Shown: piece after piece, positions 31,721 through 57,233 of the stretch
Position numbering within the stretch: position 1 is the first letter of the stretch
Layout: the number at the start of each line of letters is the position of its first letter
Assembly: GCA_009103225.1 (NCBI GenBank)
Contig: RHPI01002112.1
Span: 156,150-220,149, forward strand
From: Chlorokybus atmophyticus
Taxonomy: Eukaryota; Plantae; Mesostigma and Chlorokybus algae
DNA: 64,000 nt
Direction: 5' to 3'
The notes under the pieces: generated by a model
The model's database searches: none
The model's input: the letters and a program-made list of their open reading frames with translations, nothing else
What the model was told of the DNA's origin: nothing
Translations under genes and position numbers: made by a program

Positions 31721-32089
31721 TGCTTTCGTTGCTCCGGCAACTCGCCTTGTATGATTTAAGCTTGGGTGTGTTCTTCTCGCTCATCACTGTCGTCCTGTAA
31801 GGTACACATATTACTCACGAATACATGTTGGTTGGGGGTTTTTACAATCCGTTTACTCGCAGCTTACACTATTTCATCACACAACTACTAGCTGTACTCC
31901 CAACCTTGCAGGTGATGAGTGCACTTTGAGAGAGAGCACAAATAGTTGCTTAGGCCTACAACATGGCTGAAACATTAAAATTTCACATCACGCCAGCGTA
32001 TGTTTTCGTCAAAGGCATTGCGCCAAGCAAAGGGTATCGCTACATTATGTGGGTGCATTCGCCACTTCATCGAGCATAGTGGGTTGACA

Positions 32090-32200
32090 GTGAAAGCCAC
32101 TCAACTGCTGGAGCTGAAGGATGGCAAAGCACGCCGCGCTTTTAGCAAAGAGCGGCAGGAGGAGCAATTGCATAAAGTCCTCGCAATTGCTGATGGTGAG
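32090..32200 (+). pseudogene. Pseudouridine synthase pseudogene, exon 2 remnant (left half of the split copy)
   Basis: DGKARRAFSKERQEEQLHKVLAIADG followed by GTGAG, versus intact GGKAARRAFSKERQEERLAKILAAAG followed by GTAAG at ~55853-55932. Confidence 0.85.
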
Positions 32201-32205
32201 TTGTT

Positions 32206-32307
32206 GCAAATCTTACGGGAATCGTTAGCAGGATGTGATTGCTGAATCCGAGCGTCGCAAATCTTACGGGAATCGTTAGCAGGATGTGATTGCTGAATCC
32301 GAGCGTC
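32206..32307 (+). repeat. 51-bp tandem duplication at the left junction of the large element
   Basis: GCAAATCTTACGGGAATCGTTAGCAGGATGTGATTGCTGAATCCGAGCGTC present twice (32206-32256 and 32257-32307). Confidence 0.95.
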
Positions 32308-33297
32308 ACAAATTTAAGTGGTGACTGATTAAGGACTGAGGGATTGACGGGTGCCTGAGCCTGCCTGCCGCTGCCTGAAATGTTACTTTAGGACTGTTGG
32401 GTTTGCCGTTGGCTTAAGTGGACTGACGCGGACGGCCGCGGGCCGAAAGTGGTTGTTAGTGGCACTGACCGGTCGAGAGTTGTCAACCAGCTACCCTTTG
32501 GTCGATGTGCACAGACGGCCGTTAGCTGGTAGTCACGAACAGCTGACAGCAATAGCCGGCAGTTCCTTTGCGGTTACACTGCTGTTGATATGTGACCCTT
32601 ACCGTTTGACAAAAGTTGGCAATTCTTGCCGTAAGCCAACATTAACATGCCATGCAGCTTGTACAACCCTTGGACTGATTGTTTGGTCTTGCAACTATAA
32701 GCCCACAATATATACAATGTACCGGCATTGGTGAGAGTATGTCCACTTGCAACTGGGCAGTCAACTTGCGCATGAAACTACCTACAACATGTTGAGAGTT
32801 ATTCCTACATACGATTAGCATCGACCCTCCACACATGAGTAGAAGGTCGTAAGAACGAGCACTAGGACGACGCCATCTTGCGAAATCCGGAGTCCGGACT
32901 TAGCAAGATGGCGTCGTCGGACCAGACTCTGGACTCCAAACTGCAGCCTCACTAGCTGCTTCGTATCTCCGCGTATACTTACTCATGTTAGGCGTGTGAG
33001 AGCTTATGGAAATCTCTGATTGAAACGAAGCAACGCAGCTTGAAGCGCGTCAAAAGGCTGAGTATAGCTTACGCAGTGCTTGCAAACGTAGACGTGTGTG
33101 TAACTGGCTGGTATAAGAAACCAGCGGACAACTTGTAATGGATGAATGTTGATGTGACTTGTGTATGCTCTGGTGGCGGTAGCTCTGTCTCTGTGCATCC
33201 ATGCTTGTCTCATCTACATGTGCATGCTATTCCTTCAACACAATATTGAGTCTAGCTGTCGCACTCATGCGCAGCTTGTCAACCCGTGGTGCCTGCC

Positions 33298-34177
33298 TCA
33301 GATCTCCTCCTCGACCCCCTCCTCCTGTTCCTCCTCCGACAAGTCTTCTGCTTCAACAACAAAGTCATCTTCTGCCTCGCTCGCTGACAATACAGCGGCT
33401 ACTTCGTCCTTCAATTTGATTGTCAGCACCTCGCCGTGCACGCGCATGCGCTTGATGGTCGCTTTGAGAGTGACCACCTGCATTTGGTGATGTTGTAAGA
33501 GTGGCGTGCTGCCAGAGGACTAGCCCATCAGCATACACATGCTTACCTCGACTTCCGCTTTGTTGCACTCCGCCAGGCAGACAGTCAGCCTGTCGTGCTG
33601 CTCTTGGTTCACTATGACAAACATGGCAATCTGCAAGCATACTGCTTAATTGCCGCTGAAAACATTGAACTAGGTCATGGATTACCCGCTCGTGGCACTC
33701 CGCAGCTTCTCTTTTGCAGCTTGTGAGCTCCCGCAAGTAGAAATAGGCTGTGCATTTGCGAAATTGATCATGCTGTTCATGTGCATGACACTGGAAGCAG
33801 TGCATGAGGGTGTGCATGTGGTATTGATAGTGTATATCACGTGCAAGATACTTGAGGCTGTGCATGTGCAAGATAAAAGAACCCTAGCATGTGGCATTGA
33901 CAGTGCATTGTAACCCACCTTGGTTATGCTAGTCTTGTTTTGTCCCTTCAATTATGTCGCCGTGGTCGCAGCTGCTGGTGGGTGAGATGTCCTTAGAGGC
34001 AGTATTGTGGTGTGCCTTTGCCCACTCAGAGGGGGAGCCCTGTAAGATATCGCCCGAGTCACTGTCGTCATTTGCTGTGCCCTTAGTAGGCATGGTAGGG
34101 TTTGACACCAAGGACACCCCACCGGCACCTTGCCCGCCCTGTGCGAACATGGTCTTCATCCCGGACCTCGACCACAA
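33298..34177 (-). CDS. Orphan spliced cargo gene of the transposon (coiled-coil/acidic C-terminus), function unknown
   Basis: Exons with GT-AG borders: ..SCDHGDII / AYFYLRELTSCKREAAECHER / IAMFVIVNQEQHDRLTVCLAECNKAEVE / VVTLKATIKRMRVHGEVLTIKL..EEEQEEGVEEEI*. No family recognised. Confidence 0.5.
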
Positions 34178-34750
34178 CGCCCACTACGCCACTGGCAGCC
34201 GCTAACGACCCACCAAACGCCACATACCCTCGGCATCACCGCCTGTAAGGGCATAGCTTGGCGGAGCCATCAATGGTGTTTTCAAGCGCAGGGACTGCCA
34301 TTGCCACTGTACAAAGGTACTATTGAATTGGTATCTTTTGGCAAAGGCACTTTCGTACCATTGAAACGTTTCAAATTATTTATGCAGACTCACCCCACCC
34401 TGGGCGTGTAATGGCTCGATCGTATTATAGTAATGGTACGACGGACCCGTTACGCCAGTGAATGGCGGCCAAGTTTCCCGCCTCTGGCATGCAAGGGTAG
34501 CGGCGGCGGTGGGGGCGGCGGCGGTGGCGGTGCGTGTTGCTGGATATGATGATGCAGGTTACATTGGCTACACCTGTGTCGACGTCAGTAATGAGCTATG
34601 GGAGTCCTTTGTTCGTATTGCCACATGTGCTTCGCCACACGCAGCTCGGTCTACATGCACATTGTTAGCAGCATGGTGTGCAAGCAAATCAAGCTATATG
34701 TCGACCAGCGTCCATTACAGTAAGATGCGGGTCATGTTGAACTGGGGAGT

Positions 34751-37690
34751 TTGATCCAGGATGCGCACATGCTTGATGCTGAAGGACCCCTCCAGGAGAT
34801 TCACGCACATCAGCAACATGAGGAGGAGGAAGTGAACGAGGGCTTTCGATGTGTGCGTGTGCCTGAGAAACCTGTGGCACGCCAACATGGAAGTGGAGGC
34901 GCCCCTTCGCACGCGTCGGAATCCATGTGGTATGGCTCGGAGCATGCTCTTGCAGTGGCATTCGAGCTGTGCAACAACAGCCAAGGCCTGTCGGCCTCCG
35001 ACATGGGGCGGATCATCAAGTGCATCCAAAAAAAAAAAAACAACAATGCACACTTCCTGACGGAAGAGCTCCAGTGGGAGACCGGTGTGCATGTGGCCAG
35101 CTACCTCCGGACCACAATTGCTTTCTCTCAGTCTGAGGTGTGTTCATGGTGTGCGGTGCATGTGCTTCAACCATTACACATATGTCACATATGCACATGC
35201 GAGTGTGCTGCCGTATCAGAAGACGTAATAAATTAGGTGACGGCTAATCTGCGCAAGCCTGGAGACCCTGAGGATCAGAACATCAGCGTCACACATATGC
35301 CTGCCAAGGTTTGTAAAATGCAGTATCTGATGCAATATCTATGCAGTATGTAATCTGAGGCTAGCATGCCTATTAATGCTCTTGGTCAGAGCAGGTATAG
35401 CTTGCGCGGTTGTATGGCAATCCACATGCCGCTAATGGCTTCAATCTCCAGCACAGTGGAGACGAGCACAACTTTGGCCATCCTTCCACGGGCGATTGGT
35501 GGAAGGATGTGGAGGTGGATTTGAGGAGAGAGGTGGGGAAAGCGTCCTACTTGGCGCCTGCCATTCTGTACAATGACAAGACCACGCTGGATTGCGCGGG
35601 CAAGCGCTCTGGCTACCCTCTGATGGCATTGCTTGCCAACTACAGTTGGGACATGTATGCTAGCAACATGGGGGTTGTGATAGCGCTTCCGCCCTGGTTT
35701 ACGCAGTGGCCGGGCATCCCATTTGGGCTGAGCTCTTAATTAAAAACACATGAGATTTTTCATGACGCTTTGAGTGTTAGGGGATGTAAAGCGGGCGAGC
35801 TGGGAACGCGCTTGCCAACTACATCAGCGACTTGCAGGTAGTGGGCATGCATGGTTGTAAACGGATGCAGCCTGCCGGCAAACAGTGCATGGAGGATGTT
35901 GTCAGTGGAGCATCTGAGTTTCTCGTGTTGCAGGAGACTGCCACACTCGCACACACTATGTCGGGCAACTAAACACGAAATCCTTGCAATGTTTGTCTCG
36001 TCACCAAATCAGATCTGTTGGAGATGGATGAGGATCGGGAATTGAGAACCAAGGCTTTCTACACACCAGTAATACGTCAGCTGCGGGCGGACCTTCATAG
36101 CGGTGTTAAGAATGCACGCCAGTCAGCCAAGGCTTTCATACAGCAGCACTCCATGCATGTCGAGGAGGTACTGGTCAAGTTATCAGCATTCGCGAGGATG
36201 AATGGCTTTTCGTGTAATCAGGCAATGTGGTTTGGCAACAGAATGCACAGTGGGGTTGGCGACAATCGCGGGTGCCGGGAGCTGAGTACTACTCTCGTCT
36301 TGCCCCTGACGCAATGCATGTGCTGGGAAGCATTGACCACATGCATGCTGCTGTGTACCACGCTGCGAAAGAACGAATGAGTCCATCCACGAGACAGGAT
36401 CTGCAGGCCAGGCACGTCTTTGTTGTTGCTTTTGTGTTAAACACAATAGCCAACGACACGTGCTCACAAGCAGATGAAGATGAAGCATGCAAGGCGACTT
36501 TACGGGTTTCCCACTTTAAGGCACCCACAAGCACAGTAGAGTTTTTCCTGTCCAACCACTCCTTTCAAATGGTGGAGAAAGTGGCGGTGCTGCACACGCT
36601 GCCAGTCCTTGCAGACGGTTTGCTGCTCGACATTAAGGGCAACGATTTCTTCACCGTGACTGCCGTATCGCTTGCCCAGTGGAACAAGAAGTTGTTCAAG
36701 GCGCATGAACACACAAGAGAGACCCTGACCACAGCCGACAACGAGCTGGTTGCCTTTAAATTTGTAGTGTTGCATCCGATACTGTCGTCATATTCTGTCT
36801 CCCACAGAATTCAGGTTGGAAGATTGAGAAGATGCATCAGCTTACTCATTTTAGGCCGGCAATTCTCAGCAATGGACACTTATATTGGTTCAGCGCCAAC
36901 CGCATGGAGCAGGCGCACGCCTAAAGTATAAAAAAGTGGGCGCGTGGTGGCAACAACCGGGACTACCAGGCGCGTATTCTGAAGGCATGGAGCTATGCGG
37001 CATATGTGAGAGAGGATGGCATGGTCGTGAATCCCGAGATGCGCTCGGTCATGGCACAGGCGCGGCAGCAGTGCTGTAATGGAGAAAACGAACAAGTTGC
37101 TACAGATGGATGTGCTGACAAGGAGGGAGTTCAGCCCGTACTGCAGCGGTTCTGCGCGTAGCCGCCAAGTCGCCATGATGACTCCATTCGCTGACAAGCT
37201 GCCTGCCACCCTGGACAGCTGGTTGAGGAGGGAACATTTGGAGTTGGCCGATGAGTGGCGTGCTGTTCGCGTGGTGAACGGAGGCGCAGCGGTGTACATG
37301 ACATCCGGAGTCAACATGGCACGCGCAACTGGGATGTTCCATGGGCGGCCTGGGTTCTCAACACTTGATTTGGAAGGTGATGAGGACGGTGTGAACATGA
37401 CGTGGTGGGCTCAGGCACTCCTTTTTTTGCGCGTGGTGGTGTGGGGTGGTAGCGGCAAGCGCGTGTGGAAGGAGGTCGTGTTTGTCCGCTGGTACACGAA
37501 GCTGGATATAACGAGCGACGCAAAGTGCATTGCTCTGGAATGGGAAAAGCGTCGAGGGGGTACACATCTCGATATCGTGACTCTGGAGCAAGTAAAAGGC
37601 ATTGTCCAACTGCTCCCCATGTTTGACAAGGACAGCGCCCGTAAATCAGAGGGCAAGTATTGGGTGAGCGTTCACTGCACTACTACGTGA
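34751..37690 (+). pseudogene. Plavaka-like transposase (RNase H-fold), spliced, disrupted by stops and frameshifts
   Basis: HPSTGDWWKDVE..YLAPAILYNDKTTLDCAGKRSGYPLMALLAN matches the Plavaka GDWW..PIILxSDKT..YP.Y...GN core. Also LAPDAMHVLG (DxxH), HTRETLTTADNELVAFK, WKIEKMHQLTHF..NGHL..ANRMEQAH and a C-terminal RATGMFHGR..AQALLFL..FVRWY..IVTLEQVKGIVQLLPMF domain. In-frame TAG at 35398 and TAA at 36922. Confidence 0.78.
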
Positions 37691-37899
37691 CACATGTACT
37701 TGTCTCACTACTCTGAGTTTGGAGCATATTAGTCAGTTACGCATTGATAATCGTATGCTAAGACTTTTGCATGTGGACGTGTACAATACCGGGCAGCTGT
37801 CATTGCACAACTGTCACCACAATCGAATGTTGAATGCAACATTCAACAATCAGCCAGCTGTGTGCCAGTAAGCATCAATACAATGCACCACACTTAAGC

Positions 37900-38825
37900 C
37901 TTATAATTCCATGACACAGGAGGGTAGTCACAACGCATATCCATTGTTTCAAGCATGAGACGCCCTATGCGCTCCGCCATTGCGGGAAGAATGCATTTGC
38001 TATGGTAACGGCCGAGGTTATCCATGACACTGCGAGCACTGTTTGTCATGCAGCAATGCCGCCCCTGGTGCTTGGAAGGCCATAGACCGGGTACATTTGC
38101 TGTGGCGCATTTGATGTCACAATTGTCTTCTTCGCGATAGCGGACAGCTGCGGCGATAGCATTCCAACCGCCTTGCCCGCGTGCGAGTAGCGTGCTGATG
38201 GGGTAGCTACTATTGGCTGTGTCTTAAATAGACGGTATTGGAAGGTTGATAGGCCAAACATCGTGCCACAAAGGGACAGATTGGGTCTGAATGAGGAAGC
38301 TGCTCCTGGCACATTCTCAATCACAAACTTGACCTGGCTTGCAAGCAGCAGATGTCGGATGAGCGGTATCATATCCTGGTGTCTCAAGAATGTGCCATGT
38401 GCCGCCCGTTAAGGTGCCGAAATAGCACCAGAATAGGCCTGACATGGTAAACTGGCCCATATGAGCTCGTACTTGCTCAGCTCTCCTGCACTCAGGGTGC
38501 ATACATTGCGGTGTATGAAGGGCAGCGGGCACTTAGAGGAGGAACTTATGGCCATCCCGTCAAAGCCTGCGCGATGTAGACCGACACTGGCACCGCCACC
38601 GCCGCAGAATAGGTCGAGTGCCCTTGATCTGCGTGTGCGTCCAAGCTTGTTGTCAAATGGCGTGTATGTGGTCAAGGCTGGCCGTGGTGCTGGCCATGGA
38701 CTAACAATAATGCCGTCCGGGCTTACTTTGCGACTGACATTCTCCCCTCCGGCGCGCAGAGCATGGCGTGCCCCGTCTGCTGATGTGTACGCGAATACGT
38801 CGTGCCCTTTGAAGTTGATGGAATA
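37900..38825 (-). pseudogene. DNA (cytosine-5) methyltransferase, Dcm/phage-like type, carried by the transposon
   Basis: Motif I ALDLFCGGGGASVGLHRAGF, motif IV LIWASLPCQAYS, motif VI FVIENVPGA, LCGTMFGL..YRLFK, and C-terminal SW..IANAFFP/MAERIG (motif X-like). In-frame stops at 38409 and 38046. Confidence 0.88.
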
Positions 38826-38912
38826 CTATACGGTGCTGCCTTGCAAAGCCATTTTCCGTTGCACCATGCATATATAATGCGTCCTCAATCTCGCACGCCA
38901 AGAAGCGGTGCT

Positions 38913-39055
38913 GACCTTACGCTTACTTGAATAATTCCACAACGCCCGCATACCATTCCCATCCAGCGGCCAATGCACCATGGCACTCGCACCGATCAGC
39001 TGCTCGCATCCCAAAATAACTGCGTTCCGCAGCCGATGCAATGCGCGGTCCAACG
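38913..39055 (-). CDS. Tudor-like exon spliced in phase to the methyltransferase exon
   Basis: LIGASAMVHWPLDG, then (in the adjacent frame) WYAGVVE, then YSSKRK joined to YSINFKGHD. Resembles the plant MSH6/PDS5-type Tudor pattern V.WP.D..WY.G.V..Y....Y.V.Y. It needs compensating 1-nt shifts. Confidence 0.45.
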
Positions 39056-39266
39056 ATCAATGGTCTGCATCCTCTACAGCAGCCAGGGGGTGAAACTGCT
39101 CACGCCCACACCGTGGACGACTGCTCTGAACGCGACAACAGCTTCAACATGCATGAAATAAGCATACGCCCAACATAACATGCAGTGATACGTCGCTGTC
39201 CACTCTGCCGAATTACCTCCACAGCATCCACCACCTGTCCACTAACCACATGTCCCGGTGTTGTCC

Positions 39267-39803
39267 ATGTAACGGGAAGGTACATTATATAATGACAAAT
39301 CGACGATAAAAGCATCAAGTCTTTTATGGTCGAGTGGGCTGTGACAGTGGTCATCGGAGCTTGAGACCCGGGTTTGATTCCTGCCTTGCACACGAATTCC
39401 GCGATCGTTGTTTCTCGATCCAATATCATCGTAAATGGTCACTTTATAAGTGCCATCATCGCTGCGTCGCGACTTGCCTAATGGCAGTCGCGCCGAACTG
39501 ACCAGTTCAGTCGGCGCGGCAGGGCGCGACCTGCCTATCGCGGCGACGCGACCTGTGGGGCCGGCAGCGGCGCGCTATGCGCGCGCTGACCGGTATTGGC
39601 TTAAATTAGCCGATCCTTGGGTGGTGGGGCCGGTGATCGACCCTAAATCAGACCCCCGAGATGATTCCCCAGCTGATGGGCGCCAGCTGCCGAGGACGTC
39701 AGCGTTCTTAAGTGGGGGGGGATGTAACGGGAAGGTACATCATATAACCACAAATCAACCATAAAAGCACCAAGTCTTTTGTGGTCGAGTGGGCTGTGAC
39801 AGT
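39267..39803. repeat. 82-bp direct repeat (39267-39348 and 39722-39803) flanking a 373-bp GC-rich, hairpin-rich insert
   Basis: ATGTAACGGGAAGGTACAT.ATATAA..ACAAATC.AC.ATAAAAGCA.CAAGTCTTTT.TGGTCGAGTGGGCTGTGACAGT occurs twice. Confidence 0.88.
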
Positions 39804-39959
39804 CCATGTGAAGAAGCGCATGGGTTCCCCTCGCTACTCGAAGCATGAGCGCGAGCACGATTCGCACATGCACTGCACGCAATGGAAAAACTCAGGTTCC
39901 TTGCACAGCACTTTGCCGAGGCGGCAGCCAAACACATCGACATTGTGTGTGGTGCGATG

Positions 39960-40546
39960 TCAGCAAGCAGCACTAAAACCGTGGCACATGGTGTGCACTC
40001 GCTGGCATTTAATCAAGTGTGCTCGCATTTGCTGCCTACGGCCATTGGCACATACGTACGCATTGCATTGTGGGCACACCAAGCATTGTCTCCTAGGTGA
40101 GGGGGATTCAACTGCTGCCGCCGACATCATGCAAAATATGAATCGGCACGGCTGCCCACAAACTGAGTAGGTCTTTTGGGTAAAGGCATCAATCTTGGGT
40201 TGCCAGCTTATGAACCCTAAATGAGTCACACTTTAAAAAGCACCACTGTACCATGGACGATATTACAATACCATGCATGGTACTACATCAACATGAATGG
40301 TACTCCATCCATTAATGTTCCTACAGTACAAGGATATTTGCATACTACTACGCTCGTAGAGTAATACAGTACTGTCACTCCATGGAACCCAGAGCGCTGT
40401 CCGAGGTTGTTGCTGTCAACCACGCTCTGAACCTGCAAGGTATGCAAGCTATGCATTGACTCATGCGCCGGGCAGTCATCATACACATGTACAGCCAATG
40501 CTTCCAACAACAGCAGATCTTGGGTGTACCATGCACCATGGTGCAA
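39960..40546 (-). pseudogene. Decayed cargo exons including a zinc-finger-like segment, possibly the N-terminus of the methyltransferase gene
   Basis: QCLVCPQCNAYVCANGRRQQMRAHLIKC at ~39990-40090; DLLLLEALAVHVYDDCPAHE..VQSVVDSNNLGQRSGFHG at ~40380-40520. Confidence 0.4.
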
Positions 40547-40611
40547 CTATAAATGTACCTACATGGTTTACAGGTGTTCAACACAAACCTACAATACATG
40601 CACAATTATCA

Positions 40612-43600
40612 TCAAGCTGGGGTCCAAATCACTGCCGACACATTGGCGTCTTGCAGCAGGCGTGGCGACCAAACCGGGTGAGGTTGCTTGCACATGGGAC
40701 ACGCTTGTAGCTCCTTTAATTTATTTGCCACGTGCTTCTGCTGGTATGTGATGCAGACATAGCACATTCCTTTCTTGCAACAGGGCGTCTCCCCATCCGC
40801 TGGGGGGGNNNNGAACTCTTCACTACGACAATTCAGCACGCGGGTGTGCAAGCTGCCTCTGCGACCAAACTATGTTATCGCGTTGCAGACGCAGCGACTC
40901 CCATTTGAATGGCGCAGCATAACGCTCCATTGCCTGCTCGATTACCCAACGCCCATCTGCTGCCATACACCACCCGCTGGTCTTGGTGGTTTCGTCCAGC
41001 AAGCGTTCATCCAGGCCCTCGACATGGCTGTCACTCCTTGTGTAATCGCCCGCATCGCCATCTTCTTCAAGCTTTCACAAAATCAGCTCGACGTGCCGTA
41101 TGACATACAACCACTGCCAGCCAAAGCATGCCAAGTACAGCTCGAATGGTTTTACTTGCCACCCAGTATGTTTGCTCAGGTAGTGGCACACATCTCGACC
41201 CGCATCAGTCGACATCAGCAAGTACCTCTGTTGCAGCAGGTCGAAGTTCTGCTTTGCGGATAGCTCTTGCACATTGCCGGGTTGCTGCGGCAGCAACAAC
41301 ACCATCATATCGAGGATGGCGAGGGGCAACGATGTACTAGGGATGGCCATGTTGTGTTTGGGTTCCAACCATGGCCAATCCTCGAGGTCTGCTTATACCG
41401 CACTCTCTGCGTTTGCTCCCACTTATTGCATACTTTCGTCACCCACGTAGAGGCATGCCGCATGCGGTGATGCAGCGCGTCTTGGGCATATTGTAGGGCG
41501 ATCAACTCCTTTGCACTGTGAGTCAGCCCCTCAAAGCGTCTGCGCATCGGTGCTTTGAGCTTAGGCAGCTCGTGCCGCACCAGTTGTCTCTCTGGACAAT
41601 GCTGAGCAGCCACATGACGCTGTAAACCCGCTTGTGCCTACTCAAGTACACAGTCAGCCCCAGTAAAGCTTTAAGGCGCTGTGCTATATTTAACTACATT
41701 GTAACGATGCCTCACCTTTGCTTTTTTAGTCCTGTCAGCGTCCCTTGTTCCAACAACCTTCTTTTTTTTTTTTTCTGGGTCAACCTGCACATTTTGGCAG
41801 GCGCTCTCCGTGGCACTGTCACTTAGAGGAGGTAAAGCGTTATCTTCTTGCTCCACGGCCTCGCACTTGTTGGTTGCCTCCCGTTCCTCCACGACCTCAT
41901 GTTGCTTCATGAGGTCGAGCATGAAGCCTTTATCTTTCAGCGCAGCTTTTATGACACCTCGATTAATCTCTTTACCAACAAGACAGGCTGAGATCAATGT
42001 GGCAAGCTTAGAGGGAGAGGGCGAGCTACCGCTGCTTTTTGATGCAGATGCCTCTGGATGGTCAGAGTGCGGTGGCAGTGAGTCTCCGCAGCAGAAAGGG
42101 AGGTTGCTGAATTGTTATTGCGAGCATGTGGCTGTGGTTGAGGGGAGGCAAGATGTGCAGAACAGTCGGCTACTTCTTGCCTAGCACGCAAAAGCAAGGC
42201 ATGAGGCGTTGGTGCAGCACCCAGACTCGCAGCCGGTGGTAGCGGGGCATTGGCAACGCCATTCCACCACTCTCTGATCAAGTCTGTTACCTCCGGTGGC
42301 ACTTTATGCATAGGCCACGACCGTTGTTCGGTGCTTGCAGGCTTAAGGAGCCAGCAGTGTGCTTTTGGCTCATTACGAGCAGTGTTGCCCAACACCTGGA
42401 TTGAGTTGGGGGCTTCCTTATTTGCAACCCAAACTGCACTGCGGGCCGTGGCACCCGCTCCCCATGCTCGCGCTGAACGATCACGTAGCCAATCAACAAG
42501 CCCAGCTTGTTGGCAAACATGGCCATCTGCAGGTGCTCCACGTATACGTCTTTTCTCCGCACGATCTGTCGCACCTTAGCCATGGCTATGTTAATGTTGC
42601 AATTGACATCAGCCAACATGGTCCCAGGCAGTTTGTCGTAATACTGCGCCATCTGTCCCGCGGCACTAGTGGCTCTGCAGAAGTCTAGGATTCTGCTCGC
42701 CACACCTGCATCGACAGCCTTAGCGGTGATTTTGCGGAGAGTGTCCCCCCTGCCGTCGTCGTCCATGGTATCCAGCATGGCCCAAAATCTGCTCGAGCTG
42801 GGGCACTTGTGGTCATCCAAGACACTTTGCGCGATGAATGGCCTGGCGCAAAACACAGAATGTTAGAAGCAGTTACCAGCCGTTGGCGCATTGAAGTGGT
42901 CCCATGAGGTGAGCTGGCCACCTACCATGACTGATGGCCGTATGCGGGTTGCGGCCAGCTCCTCAAATGACTCGCTGGCAGATGGTGACCCCTGCTGCAT
43001 GCGCATACAGCACTCAAATGGTGTGTCTAACTGTCGACGGCAAGAGTCACAGGAACTGATAAAGTACCTTAGCTTGGGGCAGATTGCCGGCTTCAACTTG
43101 CAGCGGGTGGGGTCAAGTAGGTGCAGAAGCCACATCGGTTGTTGCATTATGCTGTGGTCTCACCGGTTGCGGCAAGAAGGATTGTTGCCCCACAATTGCT
43201 GCTCGTGAAGGCGACAGCAGTGCATGAAGGACTGGTGCCGCGGAAGGTGGTTGCGCTCTGGTTGCGAGGGGAGCAGGTGCGGCAGGTGAGACCACTTGTG
43301 CATGCAGCAAGGGGGGCTGTATATAGGACCCAGGTTAAAATGGCTCGCAATGTTGCAAAGGATGAATATAAGCTTATGTAGTGCCTGACGCATTGTTACC
43401 AAGGCACAAGCATAAAAGACAGCGACTTACCTCAATGGCCCGTGGGCTGCATGAAGCAGGGGAAGCCATGGGGGCTGCCAAGGTGGTATTGGGTGCACTC
43501 TCCCCGCCACCCTCAATTGCAGACTCGCCACGGAACTCGTGCGCCATGGGCACAGGATGCGCCACTGCCCCAATGAACATGTCGCAATTCAACAGGCCAA

Positions 43601-44540
43601 CATGCATGTTAAACTGATGCCGCATTGCCGCCGCGCCCATCAGCAAGTGATTGAAGGACCAGTTGATGGGATTGAATCTAAGCTTGCATAAGAGCTTGAA
43701 CAGGACCTAGTGCACTGTGGTGCTGTCAACCAATCACATGTGGGTTAGCTGCATGCTTGCGACACTGCAATTGCAATAGTCAAATGCGTCACACCGTTAT
43801 CAGTTGGTTGCTTCGAACATTCACCTGCGGCATTGCTGGTTGATGCACTGCTGGCTAAATGCCGGACGATTGGCCACGCGCTCATGTGCTCACCCAGCCT
43901 ACTTCATTCGGCACGCGCGCGCGACTTTGCACGCTCAGGCACATCCTAGCATGCAAAGGTAGGCATGCATTGGAGGTGCATGCAGTCAACATGCACAACG
44001 AGACTGGCAACAACATACCGCCCTGCTCTGTGTATCTACTCTGGCTTCCCCAATGTTGGCTTGACTGTGGGGTGGGTATGGGTGAATAGTGGAGGCCTGC
44101 AGCCACGCTACAAATATCACATGGACTGCGCCCGGAAAAAATAAATCTCTTGCAAGGAAATGCATGTAATTGTTGAGCGTAACTATGCATTCCTTTGTAC
44201 TTGTTCCCACAATCGCAATTGGTCCCGCATGATTATGACAAGGGGCTCCAAGGATTGCAGCTCCTGTCATCCACTCCTTGTTGCAGAAAGCGAGCCACCA
44301 AGCAGCTCTCTATGTGAAGATGGTCCTTAATGGCTTGCCTGCTAGTTTGTCCAATGTTGGTGATGCATGTTGGACAGCTCCATTGCTAACGCCTGCCATG
44401 ATCCATGACGTGGCGCCCGGTATTAGCTTGCTTCGCTGCTTGAACTTTTACAATCACAACTTCTCGCAAGATGTGCCACGCAGCCGCCTCCTCCTCCTAC
44501 TCCTGGTCCTCCGCCTCCTAGTCGAACCCAGGTCCACTAT
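40612..44540 (-). pseudogene. Large multidomain cargo gene: zinc finger, Ulp1-like (C48) protease, OTU-like protease, RING finger; decayed
   Basis: WSCPTCITNIGQTSRQAIKDHLHIESC (~44290-44385). Ulp1-like NPINWSFNHLL..VGLLNCDMF, IFILCNIASHF and PQHNATT-(D)CGFCTYL, the last with a 1-nt shift (~43113-43690). OTU-like APTAGNCF*HSV and YVEHLQMAMFANKLGLLIGYVIV..LLVMSQKH (~42350-42890). RING TPCCKKGMCYVCI..ACPMCKQP (~40680-40800). Confidence 0.55.
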
Positions 44541-44990
44541 GCCTGACAATTGAGCCGTCATCGACCTGATGCCCCTGCGTGCCATCATCCGGCCATCGAT
44601 GAAGCTGTTTGGGTGAGTGCACGCTAACTCCCATTAGGGCTGGTCGAGCAATGCCTTTGTCGTACCATGGATGGTACGACAAAGCTATAGTACGCCAATG
44701 GCTGGGTTGGACGAGAGATGCCTCTGTCGTACCATTAATGTTACGCCCAAGCCATTGTTACCCTTGGTTGTACAAAGCATGGATGGTACAAATGCATAAG
44801 TCGTACCATTAACCATATGAGACGGACGCACTACAAGTGCGAATCTAGTGCGGGACACTAGACGTTCAAAACCGCCTCATTTTCATTTTCGCGCCTCGTA
44901 CATTTGGGCGGGCCACCTGGCGGCGGCAGCGTTGGATGCGGCAGCGCCACCATCAGCTAAGCAAGTGGCACCCGACAATCAGTTAGAGAG

Positions 44991-46833
44991 ATGCCTCGTA
45001 GTCCATCTGCAGGTGCACCTCGTCGTGGAGGTCGGCGCCATCAGTCCACATTGCCCCTAGTGTTCAACCAGGCAACCGTCGCCAACCAGCAGCAGCCACT
45101 CTTGGCCAACCAATCGCAGCACGACCCCGTGCTAATGCCCAGCCCATCACAACAACTCCACCTGACACCGCAGTGGCAAGGGCAAGCTAGAATGCATGCG
45201 TTCTTGATGCAATGTGCACGTCGCTTCTTGCTCAACTTCAAACTTTAATGCTTGCTTCTTTCATGACTAGCACAGTGACTCACTGCATGCCGTCTGGATA
45301 AACTATGCACGTTGTTCTCCTTGCTCAACCGTAAGGATTGCATCTTTCATGGCTGGCAGCATGAGTCGCGTGGTTATGCTTGCAGAGGGTTGATAGGAAC
45401 CCCCAACCCAAACGCATTTGGCCGTGACGTAGCAACCTCGGCGGTAAGCAACCCTTCCCCAAGCAAGTGAAGGATTGGCAACGAGGTAAGCACCGTGTAA
45501 CACTGTGACACTGTGTGTAACGGATTGTTCTTCTGTTGACAGCATTTGCAAGATGCCGTCGTCGAAATCATAAACGGCCACTGGGTAGAGAGCCACGTTT
45601 ATCCCAAGGAGGACACTATTGGTAACGTCATGTGTCAGGTGCTGTGAATGCTTCATAACCTCACCGCACCGTGACACTGACCAACCTGCCCGTGACATGT
45701 AGTTGGCTTCGACCATGACGACGAGGCCAATGCGGTCAACTTTCGTGAGGTGTATTGGACGGCGAAGGAGTGCCCCACTGGAGTGTCGCCTTGAAGAAAG
45801 CTATGCAGGTTCGGTCAAAGAATGTCACCAAGATTAAGCATGTCTTTGAGAAGGAGTACAAGTGGACACTGTTTAACAGCAACAAGTGCAAGTGAGTTGG
45901 GTCCCTCACCACCATGTCAACTATGCAACACTGCCTTCTTACTCAGCCTCCATACACACGTACGCATCTCGTCTGTTGTAATCGATTCAATCAGGCACAT
46001 CGACGCCCTAATGGACCCTGAAGCTCAAAAAGCTCAGATGCGCAACGCGCTCCAAAGTAAGTCACAGGCACTATTATAGCCTAGTGCAGGTCTAAACTTG
46101 AACTACCCATATCGTGATTAATGCCTTGTTGGTACGACTATCGCAGACAAGTCATGTCGGAAATTTGAGGTGACCGACAATGCAGACCTGGAGCGGAGGA
46201 GATATATTTATGATGGGGGCAATCCCATAATCTGGCAAATGATCGTGCAATGCTGGTCTTACGCCGTCACTACACCTGGTCGTCGGCAGCTGACAGTCAA
46301 CCACCTCACATACCTGTTGCTTACGGTGAGCACTCTGAACTCAATCACTAGCAATTCCGGAAAGCTGCAGCCCCACTACAGGCTTGCAGACGCGCTGCAG
46401 TGAATAGTGGCTTTCAATGCCACTAAGACATGCCCTGTAAACTACGCAGGTGGAGCGCATCCGTAAGGGCAAGGATGGAGACCCCCTCCTAGCTGCCAGC
46501 ATCGACACACATGATGAGTACCTCAGCGAAATCAACACCATGATCATGTCAATGAAGCGAGAAATGAGGCAACGGTACGCAGCCCTCCAGCCATTCACCC
46601 TTGTGAAACGCCGCACTACATCTTGTGTTGAATACCTGAAAGATCCTAATCGGCGCCGGCCAGAAGAGACGTCTGCTCGTGACCCGCTCGCTGAGGCAGA
46701 AGCGGCATTCGATTGGCTGGCGCAAACGTTTGAGGAGGAGGAAGAGCAAGCTCCGGTGCCTCCTCTACAGGCCCCAGCGCGTGATGCTTTATTCCATAAT
46801 GACGAGCAAAGCGTGGATGGAAAGGAGCTGTAG
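44991..46833 (+). pseudogene. Orphan spliced cargo gene near the right end of the transposon (possible TnpA-like accessory protein)
   Basis: Exons with splice borders: MPRSPSAGAPRRGG.., HLQDAVVEIINGHWVESHVYPKEDTIGNVMCQ, HIDALMDPEAQKAQMRNALQ, DKSCRKFEVTDNADLERRRYIYDGGNPIIWQMIVQCW, VERIRKGKDGD..DGKEL*. Some stops and shifts; no family recognised. Confidence 0.45.
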
Positions 46834-47298
46834 CGCAGTTAGTAGTTGAGCTGGTAGTGTACACAGCTGCAAGGCTCTTGTGACTTGGTGTTGTGCATCT
46901 AAAACCAGCTCAGTCAATTGTTATTATGCTCATGCCAAAACTTGCATCCTTATGATATACAACAGAACTGCAGGCATTTGAGTCACATAATCGAATCACA
47001 AGCGTTGGCAAGTGACTGATTGACACTGTACACATTTTAGGTACCTGTACAGCACAGGCACATAACAATGCTGGCAGTCAGTTACAGTCGCGTGTAGTCA
47101 TGCTATGCAAAAACATATGACGACAGTTAGGCATCACTCACCTTCAATTGCTTAAAGGATGCCTTAATTTATTGATAATTACCTAGTTGGTGCTTGTGAA
47201 TTAGGCGCAGTCGCTTGAGCTGGACTGGCGTGTAACCTGCAGATGCCTGTTACATAAGTTGACTCACCACACAAGTAAGAGTGATGTGTAATTTGCAA

Positions 47299-47470
47299 GT
47301 GCCTGCTAATTAGGTGTGGTCACCTGTTAATGGCTGATGTATAACTTACAGGTGCCCGTTAATTAGTTGTAGTCACCTGTCAAGGCCTGATAAGCAACTA
47401 CAGGCTGTCCGGTGCCTGCTAATTAATTACATAGTCACCTGTTAAGGCCTGATAAGCAACTACAGGTGCC
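47299..47470 (+). repeat. Three ~55-60 bp subterminal tandem repeats inside the right end of the transposon
   Basis: Unit GTGCCTGCTAATTA..GTCACCTGTTAAGGCCTGATAAGCAACTACAG, repeated three times with variation. Confidence 0.85.
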
Positions 47471-47548
47471 TGTCTAAATAAGTATCTTTAGGTGCACGGC
47501 CGTCGCCAATAGTTAGTCGGCCGGCAAGAGAAACATTTTGCGACGAAA

Positions 47549-48760
47549 TGCGTGTGGTGTTGAATTATGTTATCACTTTGCCTTATGACCTGAAGGAGAT
47601 GATCTTGGCGGTGTGAGTGATAGTCAATAGCAATGTGGCCATTCTGCCGCAAACAATGAATCCTCCTCACAAGAACAGGCAAGAGAGTCGAGACAACACC
47701 ACAAGTAATCTGTCTTGTGCACAATCGTGCTTGACGCTGTTGCACAAAACGTTGATTGCAGGCATGCCACACTGCAACTAACATTAACGGCTGCAGTCTC
47801 CCTGAGCACAAGCCCAACCGCCTGTACTTCTGTTTAAACAAATCCAAGGTTTACGTGCGCAAGCGCAGCACGAAGGAAGGTGTGTTGTTGATCTGTCCAC
47901 CTAGTGGCCGAAGCCTGGATGGAAAAGCATCCCTTTAGGCATGCATCCAAGGCTGTTCACAGCACGCAACACACGCTGTACAGTTGAGAAACTATTCTGT
48001 ACACACTGCACATGCTATTTAGGAACCAAACTGTGCTTGCAGGTTGGTAGGTCGGATGTGCAAACCAAGGCTTCCGAGGTGATGCATCCGGCTAGCGGCG
48101 TAACGAAAGATTGATGCCACATATGTTGACTGTGTTGAAGCTGATCATTAGCAAGCATGTTTATTGTGACTACCTTAGATGTGGGTGATTAGGTTGACGG
48201 TGCGCTTGCAAAGCCACTCAACATGGGCTAGTGGAACAGCACGCGCGCAGCGGCTCATATTGTAATTGAGGTAAAGCTGCTTGACAAGGTGTTTGCAATG
48301 TGTCCAAACTTTCATCCAAGAGTGCATTAATGAACTTGTATTTGTGCAAAATGGGCATTGTCATGGGCAGGTGGCTAATGGGCGCAATAGGGAGGTATTG
48401 CTAGCTGTTTAAAAATATCGTTTTTCAAGCGTCATGTTTAAGCGCAGGTGCATAAGAGGACATATCATTGCGCAAGCTGCTGTAAGGCTTTTAGCCCTAA
48501 TGTTACAATCTGTTTTATGCCTTGGATGCATTGCACAACCAGTGCAAGTCTTACATGTTAAAATTGCCACGCTGTTTGTTGTTGGGTATTGTGATGCAGT
48601 CCGGGGCAGTTCACCGTAATGCGCTCATGACGTGAGGTGAAGTCAATTTTCAACAAGGCAGCACATCCCAGCTTTGAGACCACTATCCGTCCCGACTGAA
48701 GCGCTTGTCATTACATGGAATGGTGCCTTTCACGTGCAGTGCACACAGCAGCTGCCGCTG
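47549..48760 (+). pseudogene. Pseudouridine synthase pseudogene, exons 3-8 remnant (right half), unprocessed duplicate
   Basis: Collinear with 55980-57300, introns retained: EMILAV*VIVNSNVAILPQTM, INGCSLPEHKPNRLYFCLNKSK, VGRSDVQT (catalytic GRLD altered), VDGAL, VANGRNREV, GQFT. Multiple deletions and stops. Confidence 0.9.
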
Positions 48761-51184: not shown

Positions 51185-52813
51185 CGTCGCAAATTGTTTC
51201 CCCTGCCGGCCGATGAAATATTGGCAACGGCCGTGTACGTGGACTGTCGTACCTCAGTCCACCTGTAATCTCGACACAGAGACCTAACTATAACGACCGT
51301 CACCATCAGTCGGCGGCCGTTTTTGTAATGGGACTGACCTAGACTGACAGGTACCTGTTAAATACCCATCAGTCAAGCAAAGGGGACTTGACCTAACTAA
51401 CCGGTACCCAACAGTTAGGTACCGGCGACTGTACCTCGAAGGTACCCAACTATCAGGTACATTTGGGGTACCTTATGGTACCTTATGGTACCTTCAAGGT
51501 ACCTGACGTCACTGTCCCCAATACCTATCAGGTACCATTCAGTCACGAGCAGGTACTGCATGTGATTGTCGTCAACTGTGAGTGACGGCGAGTCACAAAT
51601 ATATAATATAATACAATAACTTGACTGATTACAAATATATAATATGATGAATATATAATAACAGTAAACATTGTAACATGTTGCTACGCTACAATGTAAA
51701 CTACATTGAGCTACCACTACTACTACTACCACTACTACTACAACATTGAGCTACTACTATTACTACCCTATATACTCTACCCTTATACTTAGCCGCCGCT
51801 CCTCCACTCTCCACTCCTCCGCGCCGCCGCTCCTCCGCCGCCCTCGCCGCTCCTCCTCCGCTTGGCCTGGTCGGCAAGAAGGGCGTCAACACAACGGCAT
51901 CATACACACACAAAGAAACTCACCTACCATGCCGCCGCCGCCGCCGCCGCCGCCGCCGCTTGGCCTTGCCTGGCCTGGCCTGTAAGAAGGGCGGGTTGCG
52001 CTATTGCACTTAACGTAACGCCAGCATGCACATGCAACTCAACTACTATGTGTACACACATATACACAAACTCACCAACCGTGCCGCCACTGCCGCCGCC
52101 ACCACTGCCAACGCCACCGCCGCCCTCGCCGCCGCCGCCGCCGCACAAATGTCCTTGTAAATGAAGCCGTTCAGCGTTTGAAACGCAGCTTCGTTTCAAA
52201 CGCTCAACGTCTTCAAGTTCAATGGTACAGTCGTACCACCAAAATGGTACGACTGCACCGTGTACCATTAAATGATAAGTACCGTATAGGGAACTTTGAT
52301 GGGAATGTTGTACCATCGCAATGGTACTATTGCTCCATTAAGTGTGCCGAGTATAACTAACCGGACTGACAGGTACTCGCCGCCATCGCTCGTCCCTCTT
52401 AGGAGACTTAGTTGAGATTGAGTGGTCACTTTGTTGCCAATGTAGGTTAGTCGCCGCCGCGGCTTATGTACGGCCGACGGCCGGCCGCGGGTCAACCCGA
52501 CTCACCGGTATCGACCGCCGCCATTAGGGGCCTGAATATACACTTAATTGCCATTACAGGTAGGTCGCCGTTACGGAAGCAGTATGACCGGTGGTCGGCC
52601 ATCAACATATGTTGATGTCGCGTCATCGCCGGTAGGCAACAGTCCATTGTAATGTACGATCGGCGGTCGCCAATTGATTATTGTCCACAATACGCACCGG
52701 CAATTTATTCAGTCCCTTTGTGGCTCAAGTCGTTAGGTCCGTTAGGGTCAGATAGGGTCAGGCATCCAACAGTCCCTCCGTCTGTCGTCAGTCACTATGT
52801 AAAATTTGCAACG
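51185..52813 (-). mobile_element. 1.6 kb non-autonomous member of the same TIR family, inverted, in a bicupin intron
   Basis: Ends CGTCGCAAATT (51185) and AATTTGCAACG (52813), flanked by ACAC on both sides. The reverse complement of 51185-51237 aligns to 47496-47545; the reverse complement of ~52757-52813 aligns to ~32304-32360. The insertion is absent from the equivalent intron of bicupin copy 1. No credible ORF. Confidence 0.82.
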
Positions 52814-53064
52814 ACACACACACATATGTCCAACCTTTTTGACCATCATGTGGTCGACAATTAGGTCCGCTTTAATCGAGGGTGGGTGAGTCTTGGCGTT
52901 GCAGACGAGCAGCTCGCCATAGTCGTTCTGCTCTGGTGGTTTCATGCCGCCGATTGCATACGATTGGGTTGGACCCATAGTTGAGGCGAAAGGGCGACGA
53001 TATGCAGCTTGTCCTGAAACGCAATGCTAAATTTGTTGAGAATGTGGGGCTACCGTGTAGGTAA

Positions 53065-53096
53065 AAACCTTAACCTTAACCTTAACCTTAACCTTA
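53065..53096 (+). repeat. (AACCTT)5 telomere-like microsatellite in a bicupin intron
   Basis: aaccttaaccttaaccttaaccttaacctta. Confidence 0.85.
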
Positions 53097-55083: not shown

Positions 55084-57233
55084 ATGGCCGCCGTCGTCGC
55101 CGCCGCTGGCGTCGGGGTGGCTGCGGCCGGGGCGTCGGCGTCGCTGCGGCGGGGATGCTGCAGTGCCGCCTCCTCGGGGGTGGCCTCATGGACGGGGTTG
55201 AGGCGTCGGAGCGGGGGAGCAGGGGCGAGCGCGTGGCGGCGGGGGCTGCTTGGGTGGGAGCGACCACAGCAGCAGAGGCCCTGGAGGGCACCAACAGGCT
55301 TAGGGTTTGGGTCAGGATCAGGATTCACCAGCACTTCCGCCGCAGCAAGCTCGCCCGCAAAGGTTGCCCCGCGTGGGCCCCCAAAGGTGCGCTTGCTTTG
55401 TTTGCTCAGGCAATTGCCTCGTTTGCTTTTTAACCATTCATGTGTTGACACTAGTAAGGTTTTCCTTGTTAAAACGATCGGTCTGGTTACAGGTGTGCTC
55501 AATTCACACCCATCCCAACTACTAGCATGCATTGCTTTTTCCACACATACTACTCCACAAACAGGTGGTAGCAAGCTTTTTGCATACCAACAAGTTTTGT
55601 AATTCACACGGTTACTCATATGGCTCACATATCTTTTATTTTGTATCTCACAGCTGGTAGCCGTACTCATATGGTATGGACTGATGAGTGCATTCTGAGA
55701 GCAGATAGTCGCCCACAACGTGCTAAACTTTTGAGGCACCTCATCTCAGGGTGTCGTGCTGGTTTTTGTCCGAAACAAGTGTCGTGCCAGCATTACATTG
55801 CTGCACATGGCAAAGGGTATGAATTGAGTGCCATCCAACCGCTGGTGCTGCAGGGTGGCAAAGCAGCACGCCGCGCTTTTAGCAAAGAACGGCAGGAGGA
55901 GCGTTTGGCCAAAATCCTCGCGGCTGCCGGTGGTAAGTTGTTGCAAAGGAGTGCAGCAAAGGCAGGATGTGGTTGCTGAGTTGCGTGTTCGTGTCGCTGA
56001 TGTCATCACCTTTTGACAGTGGCCTCAAGGAGAGCAAGCGAGGAGATTATCTTTGCGGGGCGAGTGACAGTTAATGGCAGTGTCGTTACACTGCCACAAA
56101 CAATGGTGGACGCTCGCAAAGACAGGCAAGAGATCAGACATTAGACTTTTTCGGCTTGCGCACTTGTGTGCTTGACACTTTTGTACATAACAGTCATTGA
56201 ACGCTCGCCACAATGCAGCATATATGTGGACGGCCGCAGTCTCCCCAAGCGCGAGCCCGACCGTCTGTACTTCTGCTTAAACAAGCCCAAGGGTTACATT
56301 TGCACGAGCAGCACGAAAGAGGGCGGGAGCAGGCGCGTCGTTGATCTGTTTGACGAATGGCTTGATGTCTGGATGGAAAAGCACCCCGGAGGCATGCGCC
56401 CAAGGCTTTTTACAGTACGCACAGAACTATTGTACTGTATTGTATTGTACAACTGTTGTGGACACGCTGCTCAGGATAGATGACATGCGCTCGCAGGTCG
56501 GCAGGTTGGATGTGCAAACGACGGGTCTTCTGCTCGTGACCAACGACGGCGACTGGGCTCAGGAGGTGATGCATCCGTCCAGCGGCGTCACGAAGGAGTA
56601 CATTGCCACCACGGACGTGCCTCCTACGCGCCGCCAGCTCGCCACCATCGAACAAGGCTGCGAGGCAAGCAGGCAGCATTGTTCAGTACTTGGAAATCAG
56701 CAAGCAGCATTTTGTGACCTATCTTTCAATGGGTGATCAGGTTGACGGAGCGTTTGTGAAGCCAGTTTATGTTGGGCTCGTAGAACAGGACCCTCGCAGT
56801 GCTTCTCGTGTCGTGATTGAGGTAAAACTTGCTGATTGGGTGTCTGCAACCTGTTAACGCTTGCATCTGGGAGCACATTGTTGAACTTTTTGTGCATATT
56901 ACTGTGATGCGCAGGTGGCGGATGGGCGCAATAGAGAGGTCCGGCGGCTGATCGAGAATGCCGGCCTGCAAGCGATCAAGTTGAAGCGCACGCGCATAGG
57001 AGGACTGCGATTGTCACGCAAACTGCTGTAAGTCTTTTTGCCCACTCGTCTGAAGCCCTGGATGCCCTGCACAGCCAGTGTAAGTCTGGCATGTTCAATT
57101 GCCATGCTGTTTGATGTGTTGGGTTTGTTGATACAGTCCAGGGCAGTTCACCGCGATATACTCGCATGAGGTGAAGCAAGTGCTGAACAAGGCGGCACAG
57201 TCCAGCTTCGCTACCACTATTGTTCCCCATTGA
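55084..57233 (+). CDS. SVR1: RsuA/RluB-family rRNA pseudouridine synthase with S4 domain, probably plastid-targeted (SVR1-like), 8 exons
   Basis: Ala/Arg/Ser-rich transit-like leader; ERLAKILAAAGVASRRASEEIIFAGRVTVNG (S4); YFCLNKPKGYICT; VGRLDVQTTGLLLVTNDG (catalytic Asp); MHPSSGVTKEY; DGRNREVRRLIE..LKRTRIGGL. TGA at 57231-57233. The symbol comes from family resemblance only. Confidence 0.92.

Follow-up and report, generated by a model that had tools for sequence, protein, structure and literature searches.

In a 64,000-nt stretch of the draft nuclear assembly of the alga Chlorokybus atmophyticus (GenBank assembly GCA_009103225.1, contig RHPI01002112.1, positions 156,150 to 220,149; hereafter the window), we found a block of about 15.2 kb, here called E1, that interrupts an intron in one member of a tandem pair of pseudouridine-synthase paralogs. 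E1 is likely a degenerate, formerly autonomous DDE cut-and-paste transposon of the Plavaka lineage (CACTA/EnSpm-Mirage-Chapaev supergroup) that carries the pseudogene of a phage-type C5 (cytosine-5) DNA methyltransferase, referred to below as the methylase. The window contains five gaps of N, one of which (4 N, 40809-40812) lies within E1, so that the length given for the element is a minimum. The coordinates of the main features are collected in Table 1.

The block is recognized as an insertion because its flanks match the second paralog and because the junction is colinear with that paralog once the element is removed. In a comparison of the window with itself, the left flank (32096-32210) matches 55830-55947 at 81% and the right flank (47594-47880) matches 56041-56323 at 72%; at 55.9-56.0 kb the two matching blocks are only about 94 bp of intron apart. 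When the flanks of E1 are joined without the element and without one unit of a 51-bp duplication found at its left end, the global alignment stays colinear across the junction. The two paralogs occupy 31979-32242 plus 47594-48111 and 55572-56733, and the exon that follows the intron in the uninterrupted one (56281-56733) matches PF00849 (PseudoU_synth_2) at 47.3 bits; the empty site is paralogous, not allelic. About 13 residues around the conserved GRLD...TNDG stretch are missing from the exon next to E1, and the interrupted copy is probably a pseudogene. An earlier note on this DNA, made by a model from the letters alone, had described a 15-kb element cleanly interrupting the intron of a host pseudogene. 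The interruption is borne out and its boundaries were exact to the nucleotide, coinciding with the termini described next, and the pseudogene state of the host copy is plausible from the missing residues.

The motif CGTYRCAAA is read at all four termini of E1 and of a second, much shorter element in the window, E2. The last 51 nt of E1 (47495-47545) recur reversed at 51185-51235 with 86% identity (blastn-short E 3.4e-7). In reverse orientation, the right end of E1 and the left end of E2 are 84% identical over the last 55 nt, and the left end of E1 (its first ~63 nt) is 71% identical to the reverse-complemented right end of E2. Between the left and right ends of one element, identity is confined to the first 9 nt, and E1 has no internal copies of the terminus other than one chance 8-mer within the methylase open reading frame (ORF). 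The right end also carries direct repeats, namely 2.1 copies of 53 bp at 47282-47391, as resolved by Tandem Repeats Finder (TRF), and 35-nt units on to 47466. E2 has no coding capacity and, beyond its ends, no long stretch in common with E1. Judged from their sequences, the two make a pair of an autonomous-type element and its non-autonomous derivative, whose inverted termini are short and imperfect and whose subterminal regions are asymmetric. The terminal inverted repeats and subterminal repeats reported earlier are thus both present. Together, E2 and the paralogous empty site provide what cut-and-paste transposition predicts, namely more than one locus with both ends plus an unoccupied site.

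The two elements are also linked by internal motifs. GGTAC/GGTACC and GTCGTACC are abundant in E2, which contains CCG/CTA microsatellites as well. For the octamer GTCGTACC, 0.92 occurrences would be expected in the window and 12 are seen; nine of these sites fall within E1 (34435, 44659-44807, 46131) or E2 (51246, 52230-52253), often as ATGGTACGAC palindromes. In E1, a 20-bp GGTAC array at 40249-40329 is related to the palindrome array at 44637-44812. The GTCGTACC arrays are possible binding sites for an element-encoded protein.

The lineage of E1 was assigned through its transposase gene. A Pfam scan of 124 stop-to-stop pieces of at least 62 aa from both strands (E<=0.01) returned exactly two families of interest, Plavaka and DNA_methylase. 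The Plavaka profile (PF18759) matched the piece at 35401-35736 with E 1.2e-6 and 28.4 bits, above the gathering cut-off of 26.3, and no other transposase family gave a match at E<=1. The spliced Plavaka transposase claimed earlier is thus recovered, as a multi-exon gene with this match on one of its exons. A CxxC (PCNVC) and a D.MH..G string are seen in the plus-strand pieces. Strings of both kinds are expected downstream of the second catalytic Asp in the CACTA-Mirage-Chapaev (CMC) supergroup, for which the CxxC motif is reportedly typical. An in-frame TAA lies three codons before PCNVC, with both neighboring pieces in the same frame. Reading it as part of an intron was rejected, since no AG acceptor occurs from the stop to PCNVC and no in-phase GT..AG pair is available; it is a nonsense mutation. 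A 25-nt repeat (80%) at 35631-35655 and 35810-35834, in consecutive pieces and different frames (LANYSWDM and LANYISDL), points to a possible small duplication within this decayed gene.

The methylase gene is arranged tail to tail (convergent) with the transposase gene, about 200 bp from the stop of the latter. The piece at 38412-38825 contains motifs I and IV, and 38049-38408 encodes ENV and QYRLF; a C-terminal module, weakly recognizable, falls in the reading frame of 37897-38223. The motifs DLFCGGGG (I), LPCQ (IV), and IENVPG (VI) follow each other in the order of C5-methyltransferases. The match to PF00145 fell just below the cut-off (21.1 bits against 22), while a hidden Markov model (HMM) specific to the family matched strongly. 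This HMM was built from 32 homologues retrieved from a protein database, which are 189-240 aa long, 43-56% identical over the N-terminal catalytic half, and of one compact architecture. It matched the two main pieces of the gene with E 1.7e-23 (positions 2-70) and 3.8e-15 (positions 79-149), with the modules in the right order. The methylase belongs to a small (~210-240 aa) bacteriophage-type family and not to a eukaryotic DNMT class, because it matches phrog_363 (2.9e-12), because tblastn found 86 actinobacteriophage records (with the gene annotated there as a ~238-aa DNA methyltransferase), and because the neighborhoods of two metagenomic homologues are phage-like, consisting of tightly packed, small, overlapping ORFs. 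Searches of protein database, metagenome, and viral-contig collections revealed no related eukaryotic element with such a methylase.

Several lesions disable this gene. An in-frame TAA separates motif IV (LPCQ) from motif VI (ENV), and here too an intron was rejected, no in-phase GT..AG being possible. The C-terminal module AIPPAY..IG is weakly recognizable as ILPAMAERIG (2.1 bits, at the correct profile position) about 8 codons past the last in-frame homology; it sits in a different frame, which indicates a frameshift. Conserved residues are altered as well (RHRLFE to QYRLFK, PPCQ to LPCQ), and no intact frame running through the R.R/RHRLFE and AIPPAY modules was found. The ORF has a 66-residue in-frame N-terminal extension and no start codon. 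We considered this extension as a phage domain and rejected it, because the Arthrobacter phage tblastn matches with 96% coverage run through a stop between the RHH (ribbon-helix-helix) and methylase genes, which share a frame there. The C5-methyltransferase gene proposed in the earlier note does lie within the boundaries of the element; its enzyme is of the phage type, in the style of restriction evasion, and is no eukaryotic epigenetic writer.

With an in-frame TAA in each, and with the frameshift and altered conserved residues of the methylase, both recognizable genes of E1 are pseudogenes and the copy is dead. The element had been suggested to manipulate host silencing; because the methylase and the transposase are pseudogenes, nothing in this copy would be able to do so now. 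A variant genetic code was considered for the in-frame TAAs and rejected, given that the ORF of a host sigma factor in the window ends in TAG at the expected C terminus (TAA itself was left unchecked in host genes). The two disabling stops are both TAA and lie at positions that are variable in relatives, which would be compatible with C-to-T changes in CAA codons.

A number of observations weigh against the Plavaka assignment or against methylase cargo as a property of the element. CGTYRCAAA matches neither the termini of complete fungal Plavaka elements, which are TGT..ACA (PlavakaA) or CATCA..TGATG (PlavakaB) with 2-3-bp duplications (Kojima 2025, PMC12730594), nor their CA..TG rule. AG and AA stand on the two sides of E1 and give no sign of a 2-3-bp target-site duplication; at E2 the flanking sequences are AC and AC, or ACAC and ACAC, within a CA-rich context. 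At both elements a 6/8 match (with a 1-nt offset at E1) would fit an 8-bp duplication, which is atypical for the lineage, and the chance of such a match is ~0.01 per element before correction for the lengths and offsets examined. Duplication models of 0, 2, and 8 bp score alike on the paralog alignment. In the 51-bp tandem duplication next to E1, the start of the second unit, GTCGCAAAT, combines the element terminus (GTC..) with host GTTGCAAAT; the duplication may have arisen by unequal exchange or slippage after the insertion, between the terminus and a look-alike host site. The Plavaka match covers positions 81-148 of the 325 in the profile, on one exon only. The piece at 36218-36928 had no relative in an exhaustive HMMER search of 1.8 billion representatives, and word-indexed homologue searches with it and with 35401-35736 were blank; as the other exons yielded no relatives, the lineage appears to be poorly sampled and the assignment rests on one exon. 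No other full-length copy of E1 was found in any collection searched, and neither a metagenome scan with the Plavaka exon and with a degenerate pattern of the terminal DNA nor a viral-contig scan with the methylase piece gave anything further. Considering that the profile matches and the described terminal motifs do not, we class E1 as Plavaka related, possibly of a distinct sublineage.

The rest of E1 contains orphan ORF pieces. Coding-like periodicity marks the minus strand at 40.8-42.9 kb and the plus strand at 46.1-46.8 kb, where orphan genes or their remains are likely, and the pattern is compatible with the two divergent gene pairs reported earlier; the periodicity score is a guide only, and codon-usage log-odds from the few host exons in the window are too weak for gene models. 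The earlier note had assigned to the element Ulp1-like (PF02902) and OTU-like (PF02338) proteases, a RING finger, and a Tudor-like segment, which together with the C5 writer would make up a functional epigenetic and ubiquitin toolkit. None of these was confirmed. Peptidase_C48, OTU, RING, and Tudor gave no match in the 124 pieces, in another 115, shorter pieces (38-61 aa; E<=0.05, with eight matches at E 0.004-0.04, about the chance expectation), or in targeted domain scans up to E 5; searches of NCBIfam, PHROGs, and PDB sequences with the cargo ORFs returned the methylase only. A lone Q..DCG-like string (44051-44071) that recalls Ulp1 lies in a matchless 76-aa piece. The candidate OTU string DDGILQ (45306-45800) lacks the catalytic Cys, and a motif scan found neither D[GA].C nor G[DN]C. 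The Cys-rich piece at 40615-40806, probably what had been called the RING finger, has the suggestive spacing CC..CxxC..CPxC and lacks the full RING regular expression and any zf-RING match up to E 5, with some residual doubt because its N-terminal part is interrupted by the 4-N gap. The pieces upstream of and at the methylase (38829-39056 and 38412-38825, both minus strand) have no Tudor, Agenet, or chromo match. Since short exons reduce the sensitivity of profiles and the splicing is unknown, these negatives lower the toolkit claims without excluding them; with the methylase and the transposase both pseudogenes, we regard a functional toolkit as very improbable. Single-sequence AlphaFold2 models of the two longest orphan pieces were unusable (predicted local distance difference test scores, pLDDT, of 27 and 34).

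Two other explanations concern the origin of the cargo. The methylase could be a one-off, picked up by this copy through transduplication or horizontal transfer or as part of a nested insertion, that decayed without serving the element. A single full-length copy is compatible with such a capture or secondary insertion, E2 keeps no internal sequence, and the gene is intronless and heavily decayed, with weak codon periodicity; the lack of eukaryotic elements with related methylases in the collections searched points the same way. On the other hand, the convergent placement close to the 3' end of the transposase gene is a tidy, gene-like arrangement, the methylase has no flanking terminal repeats or duplicated target of its own, no protein domains of foreign transposable elements (TEs) were found in E1, and the transposase is decayed to the same degree, so that the methylase is not singled out. 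We consider the one-off explanation a real but minority possibility. It is also conceivable that E1 is a composite, i.e., a short Plavaka-like element enlarged by unrelated insertions such as endogenized viral DNA. Large DNA viruses commonly carry phage-type methylases, about 8 kb of E1 are orphan ORFs, an assembly gap is present, and two 82-nt repeats point to one or more small nested insertions or duplications. However, no viral hallmark or other TE domain was detected in E1 and no internal copies of the terminus are present, and the family-specific GTCGTACC recurs in E2 and at distant places of E1 (34.4, 44.7, and 46.1 kb), linking these to the family; a composite is accordingly unlikely in our view. 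The 82-nt repeats themselves (39267-39348 and 39722-39803) are direct and 91% identical, each with a hairpin, and have about 370 bp of GC-rich sequence between them. A SINE-like (short interspersed nuclear element) origin was sought and neither a tRNA nor an Rfam match was found at 39.3-39.8 kb; they could stem from a local duplication or from the nesting of a small insertion.

Table 1. Positions of E1, E2, and associated features in the window
Feature	Position	Strand	Description and basis
E1, whole element	32304-47545	+	Autonomous type but degenerate, ~15.2 kb; flanks match paralogous empty site, termini common to E2
Left terminal inverted repeat CGTCACAAA	32304-32312	+	9 nt
Right terminal inverted repeat, reverse complement CGTCGCAAA	47537-47545	-	9 nt
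Right subterminal direct repeats	47282-47473	+	53-62-bp units with GTGCCTG..TAATTA and TAGTCACCTGT motifs; repeat search
Tandem duplication of host intron abutting left end of E1	32203-32304	+	51 bp; repeat search, TRF; host origin from paralog alignment
Paralogous empty site	55830-56323	+	Uninterrupted exon-intron-exon of tandem pseudouridine-synthase paralog; alignment to E1 flanks
E2	51185-52813	-	1.6-kb non-autonomous relative, opposite orientation, 3.6 kb downstream of E1; both ends shared with E1
Transposase gene	34724-37690	+	Multi-exon; Pfam Plavaka match on one exon, coding-like codon periodicity
Transposase ORF pieces	34724-35233, 35401-35736, 35790-35969, 35973-36377, 36218-36928, 36925-37158, 37031-37687	+	
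In-frame TAA in transposase	35970-35972	+	Within catalytic region
C5 DNA-methyltransferase pseudogene	37897-38825	-	Intronless, phage type; Pfam, family HMM, motifs
In-frame TAA in methylase	38409-38411	-	ORF reading
Orphan ORF pieces	40615-42862	-	42290-42862, 41674-42114, 41078-41392, 40826-41074, and Cys-rich 40615-40806; coding-like periodicity
Internal array	44637-44812	+	Three 67-74-bp units around palindrome GTCGTACCAT / ATGGTACGAC; repeat search, TRF
Orphan ORF pieces	45306-46830		45306-45800 (-), 46122-46400 (+), 46441-46830 (+); ORF scan, periodicity

Outside the two elements, the window contains a single 474-aa ORF (6467-7891) for a complete sigma-70-type factor with regions 1.2, 2, 3, and 4, a nuclear gene for a sigma factor of the plastid RNA polymerase; it implies a photosynthetic host and is the only direct clue to this in the window. 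A long minus-strand ORF at 59099-59617 consists almost wholly of Arg-Asp, Arg-Ser, and Lys-Asp repeats and resembles an RS/RD-rich (Arg-Ser/Arg-Asp) splicing-related protein, the Leu-Ser-rich ORF on the opposite strand being an artefact of composition. Between E2 and the paralogous gene there is a run of about five copies of the hexamer AACCTT (53061-53095).

If E1 is the remnant of a Plavaka-lineage transposon, an intact transposase would find its binding sites in the subterminal repeats, perhaps also in the internal GTCGTACC arrays, and would then excise and reinsert the element. The methylase would have entered by horizontal transfer from a phage or a bacterium and travelled along as cargo; in functional form it would modify a short cytosine-containing site, either on the element itself or genome-wide. 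We infer that it may be cargo of the whole family rather than of this copy, with a role in self-marking or in interference with silencing. That intact relatives keep a phage-derived C5 methylase as conserved Plavaka cargo and, by their non-canonical termini and 8-bp duplication, form a new sublineage is a tentative idea that we rather doubt at present.

Chromatin- and DNA-modifying enzymes on mobile elements are a current topic. In published cases, fungal Plavaka and KDZ elements have TET/JBP, red-algal Plavaka elements have N6-methylase/SET and 2OG-oxygenase genes, and retrotransposons have DNMTs. A C5 methylase of phage ancestry in a Plavaka-type transposon, if true, would be a further independent acquisition of a 5-methylcytosine (5mC) writer by a mobile element, and a clear case of gene flow from phage to eukaryote via a transposon. 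Should intact copies of the family carry the gene, this would be a cellular cut-and-paste transposon that writes 5mC itself, marking its own DNA or the host genome. The evidence now consists of one dead copy and is a lead for a genome-wide search rather than a demonstrated system.

Plavaka transposases were defined in basidiomycetes, where they adjoin TET/JBP genes. The E1 transposase matches PF18759, which was built from these fungal proteins, and cut-and-paste movement would be common to both (Iyer et al. 2014; PMC12730594). Fungal elements can carry TET/JBP, a 5mC oxidase, as an accessory gene for DNA modification, whereas E1 carries a phage-type 5mC writer instead; E1 also differs in having CGTYRCAAA in place of the TGT..ACA or CATCA..TGATG termini and in its photosynthetic eukaryotic host. 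Closer in several respects are the giant Plavaka elements of 17-19 kb that dominate the genome of the red alga Bostrychia, with accessory genes PAG1-3 whose proteins include an N6-adenine methylase (PF01555) fused to SET and a ParB-like/2OG-oxygenase protein, near inverted-repeat arrays (bioRxiv 10.1101/2025.02.11.637652). They resemble E1 in size (15 kb), algal host, a transposase accompanied by accessory genes that include a DNA methylase, internal inverted-repeat arrays, and the degenerate state of most copies. However, neither the N6-methylase/SET nor the ParB-like/2OG-oxygenase domains were detected in E1, whose methylase is of the C5 type.

Plavaka elements have also been reported in green lineages, as EnSpm-Plavaka in Auxenochlorella, a green alga (PMC12636532), and, in a Spirogyra survey, from chlorophytes as well as streptophytes (PMC13519894); the parts of these reports available to us mention no methylase cargo, unlike what is seen in E1. 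The premise of novelty in the earlier note, which knew Plavaka mainly from fungi and no such combination with epigenetic genes, has therefore been overtaken both for the algal hosts and for the epigenetic cargo (bioRxiv 10.1101/2025.02.11.637652). Mobile elements with a C5 cytosine methyltransferase of their own are also known: LINE (long interspersed nuclear element), DIRS (Dictyostelium intermediate repeat sequence), and LTR (long terminal repeat) retroelements of dinoflagellates and charophytes carry conserved, expressed DNMT3-like or eukaryote-type enzymes (de Mendoza et al. 2018, PMC5890265); E1, in contrast, is a DNA transposon with a broken enzyme of ~220 aa and of phage type. In that work, DNA transposons encoding a DNMT are noted only for marine viruses, with reference to Bao & Jurka 2013 (PMC5890265).

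The C5 enzymes of Streptomyces, Mycobacterium, and Arthrobacter phages (phrog_363) share with the E1 methylase the motif order LDLFCGGGG.., IWAS.PCQ, VIENV.G, and LCG.MFGL...R.FE; the E1 gene differs in lying inside a eukaryotic transposon and in its 66-residue extension, stop, frameshift, QYR, and LPCQ. Plant En/Spm (CACTA) elements resemble E1 in their short terminal inverted repeats, asymmetric subterminal repeats, and deletion derivatives that share only the ends, whereas E1 has no CACTA termini, no Transposase_21/24 match, and no visible 3-bp duplication. None of the Plavaka descriptions cited above has a methylase of the C5 rather than the N6 type. Earlier work had thus already covered the lineage, the prospect that the host is an alga, and the concept of epigenetic cargo; what E1 adds is a phage-type C5 methylase in such an element, together with its unusual termini.

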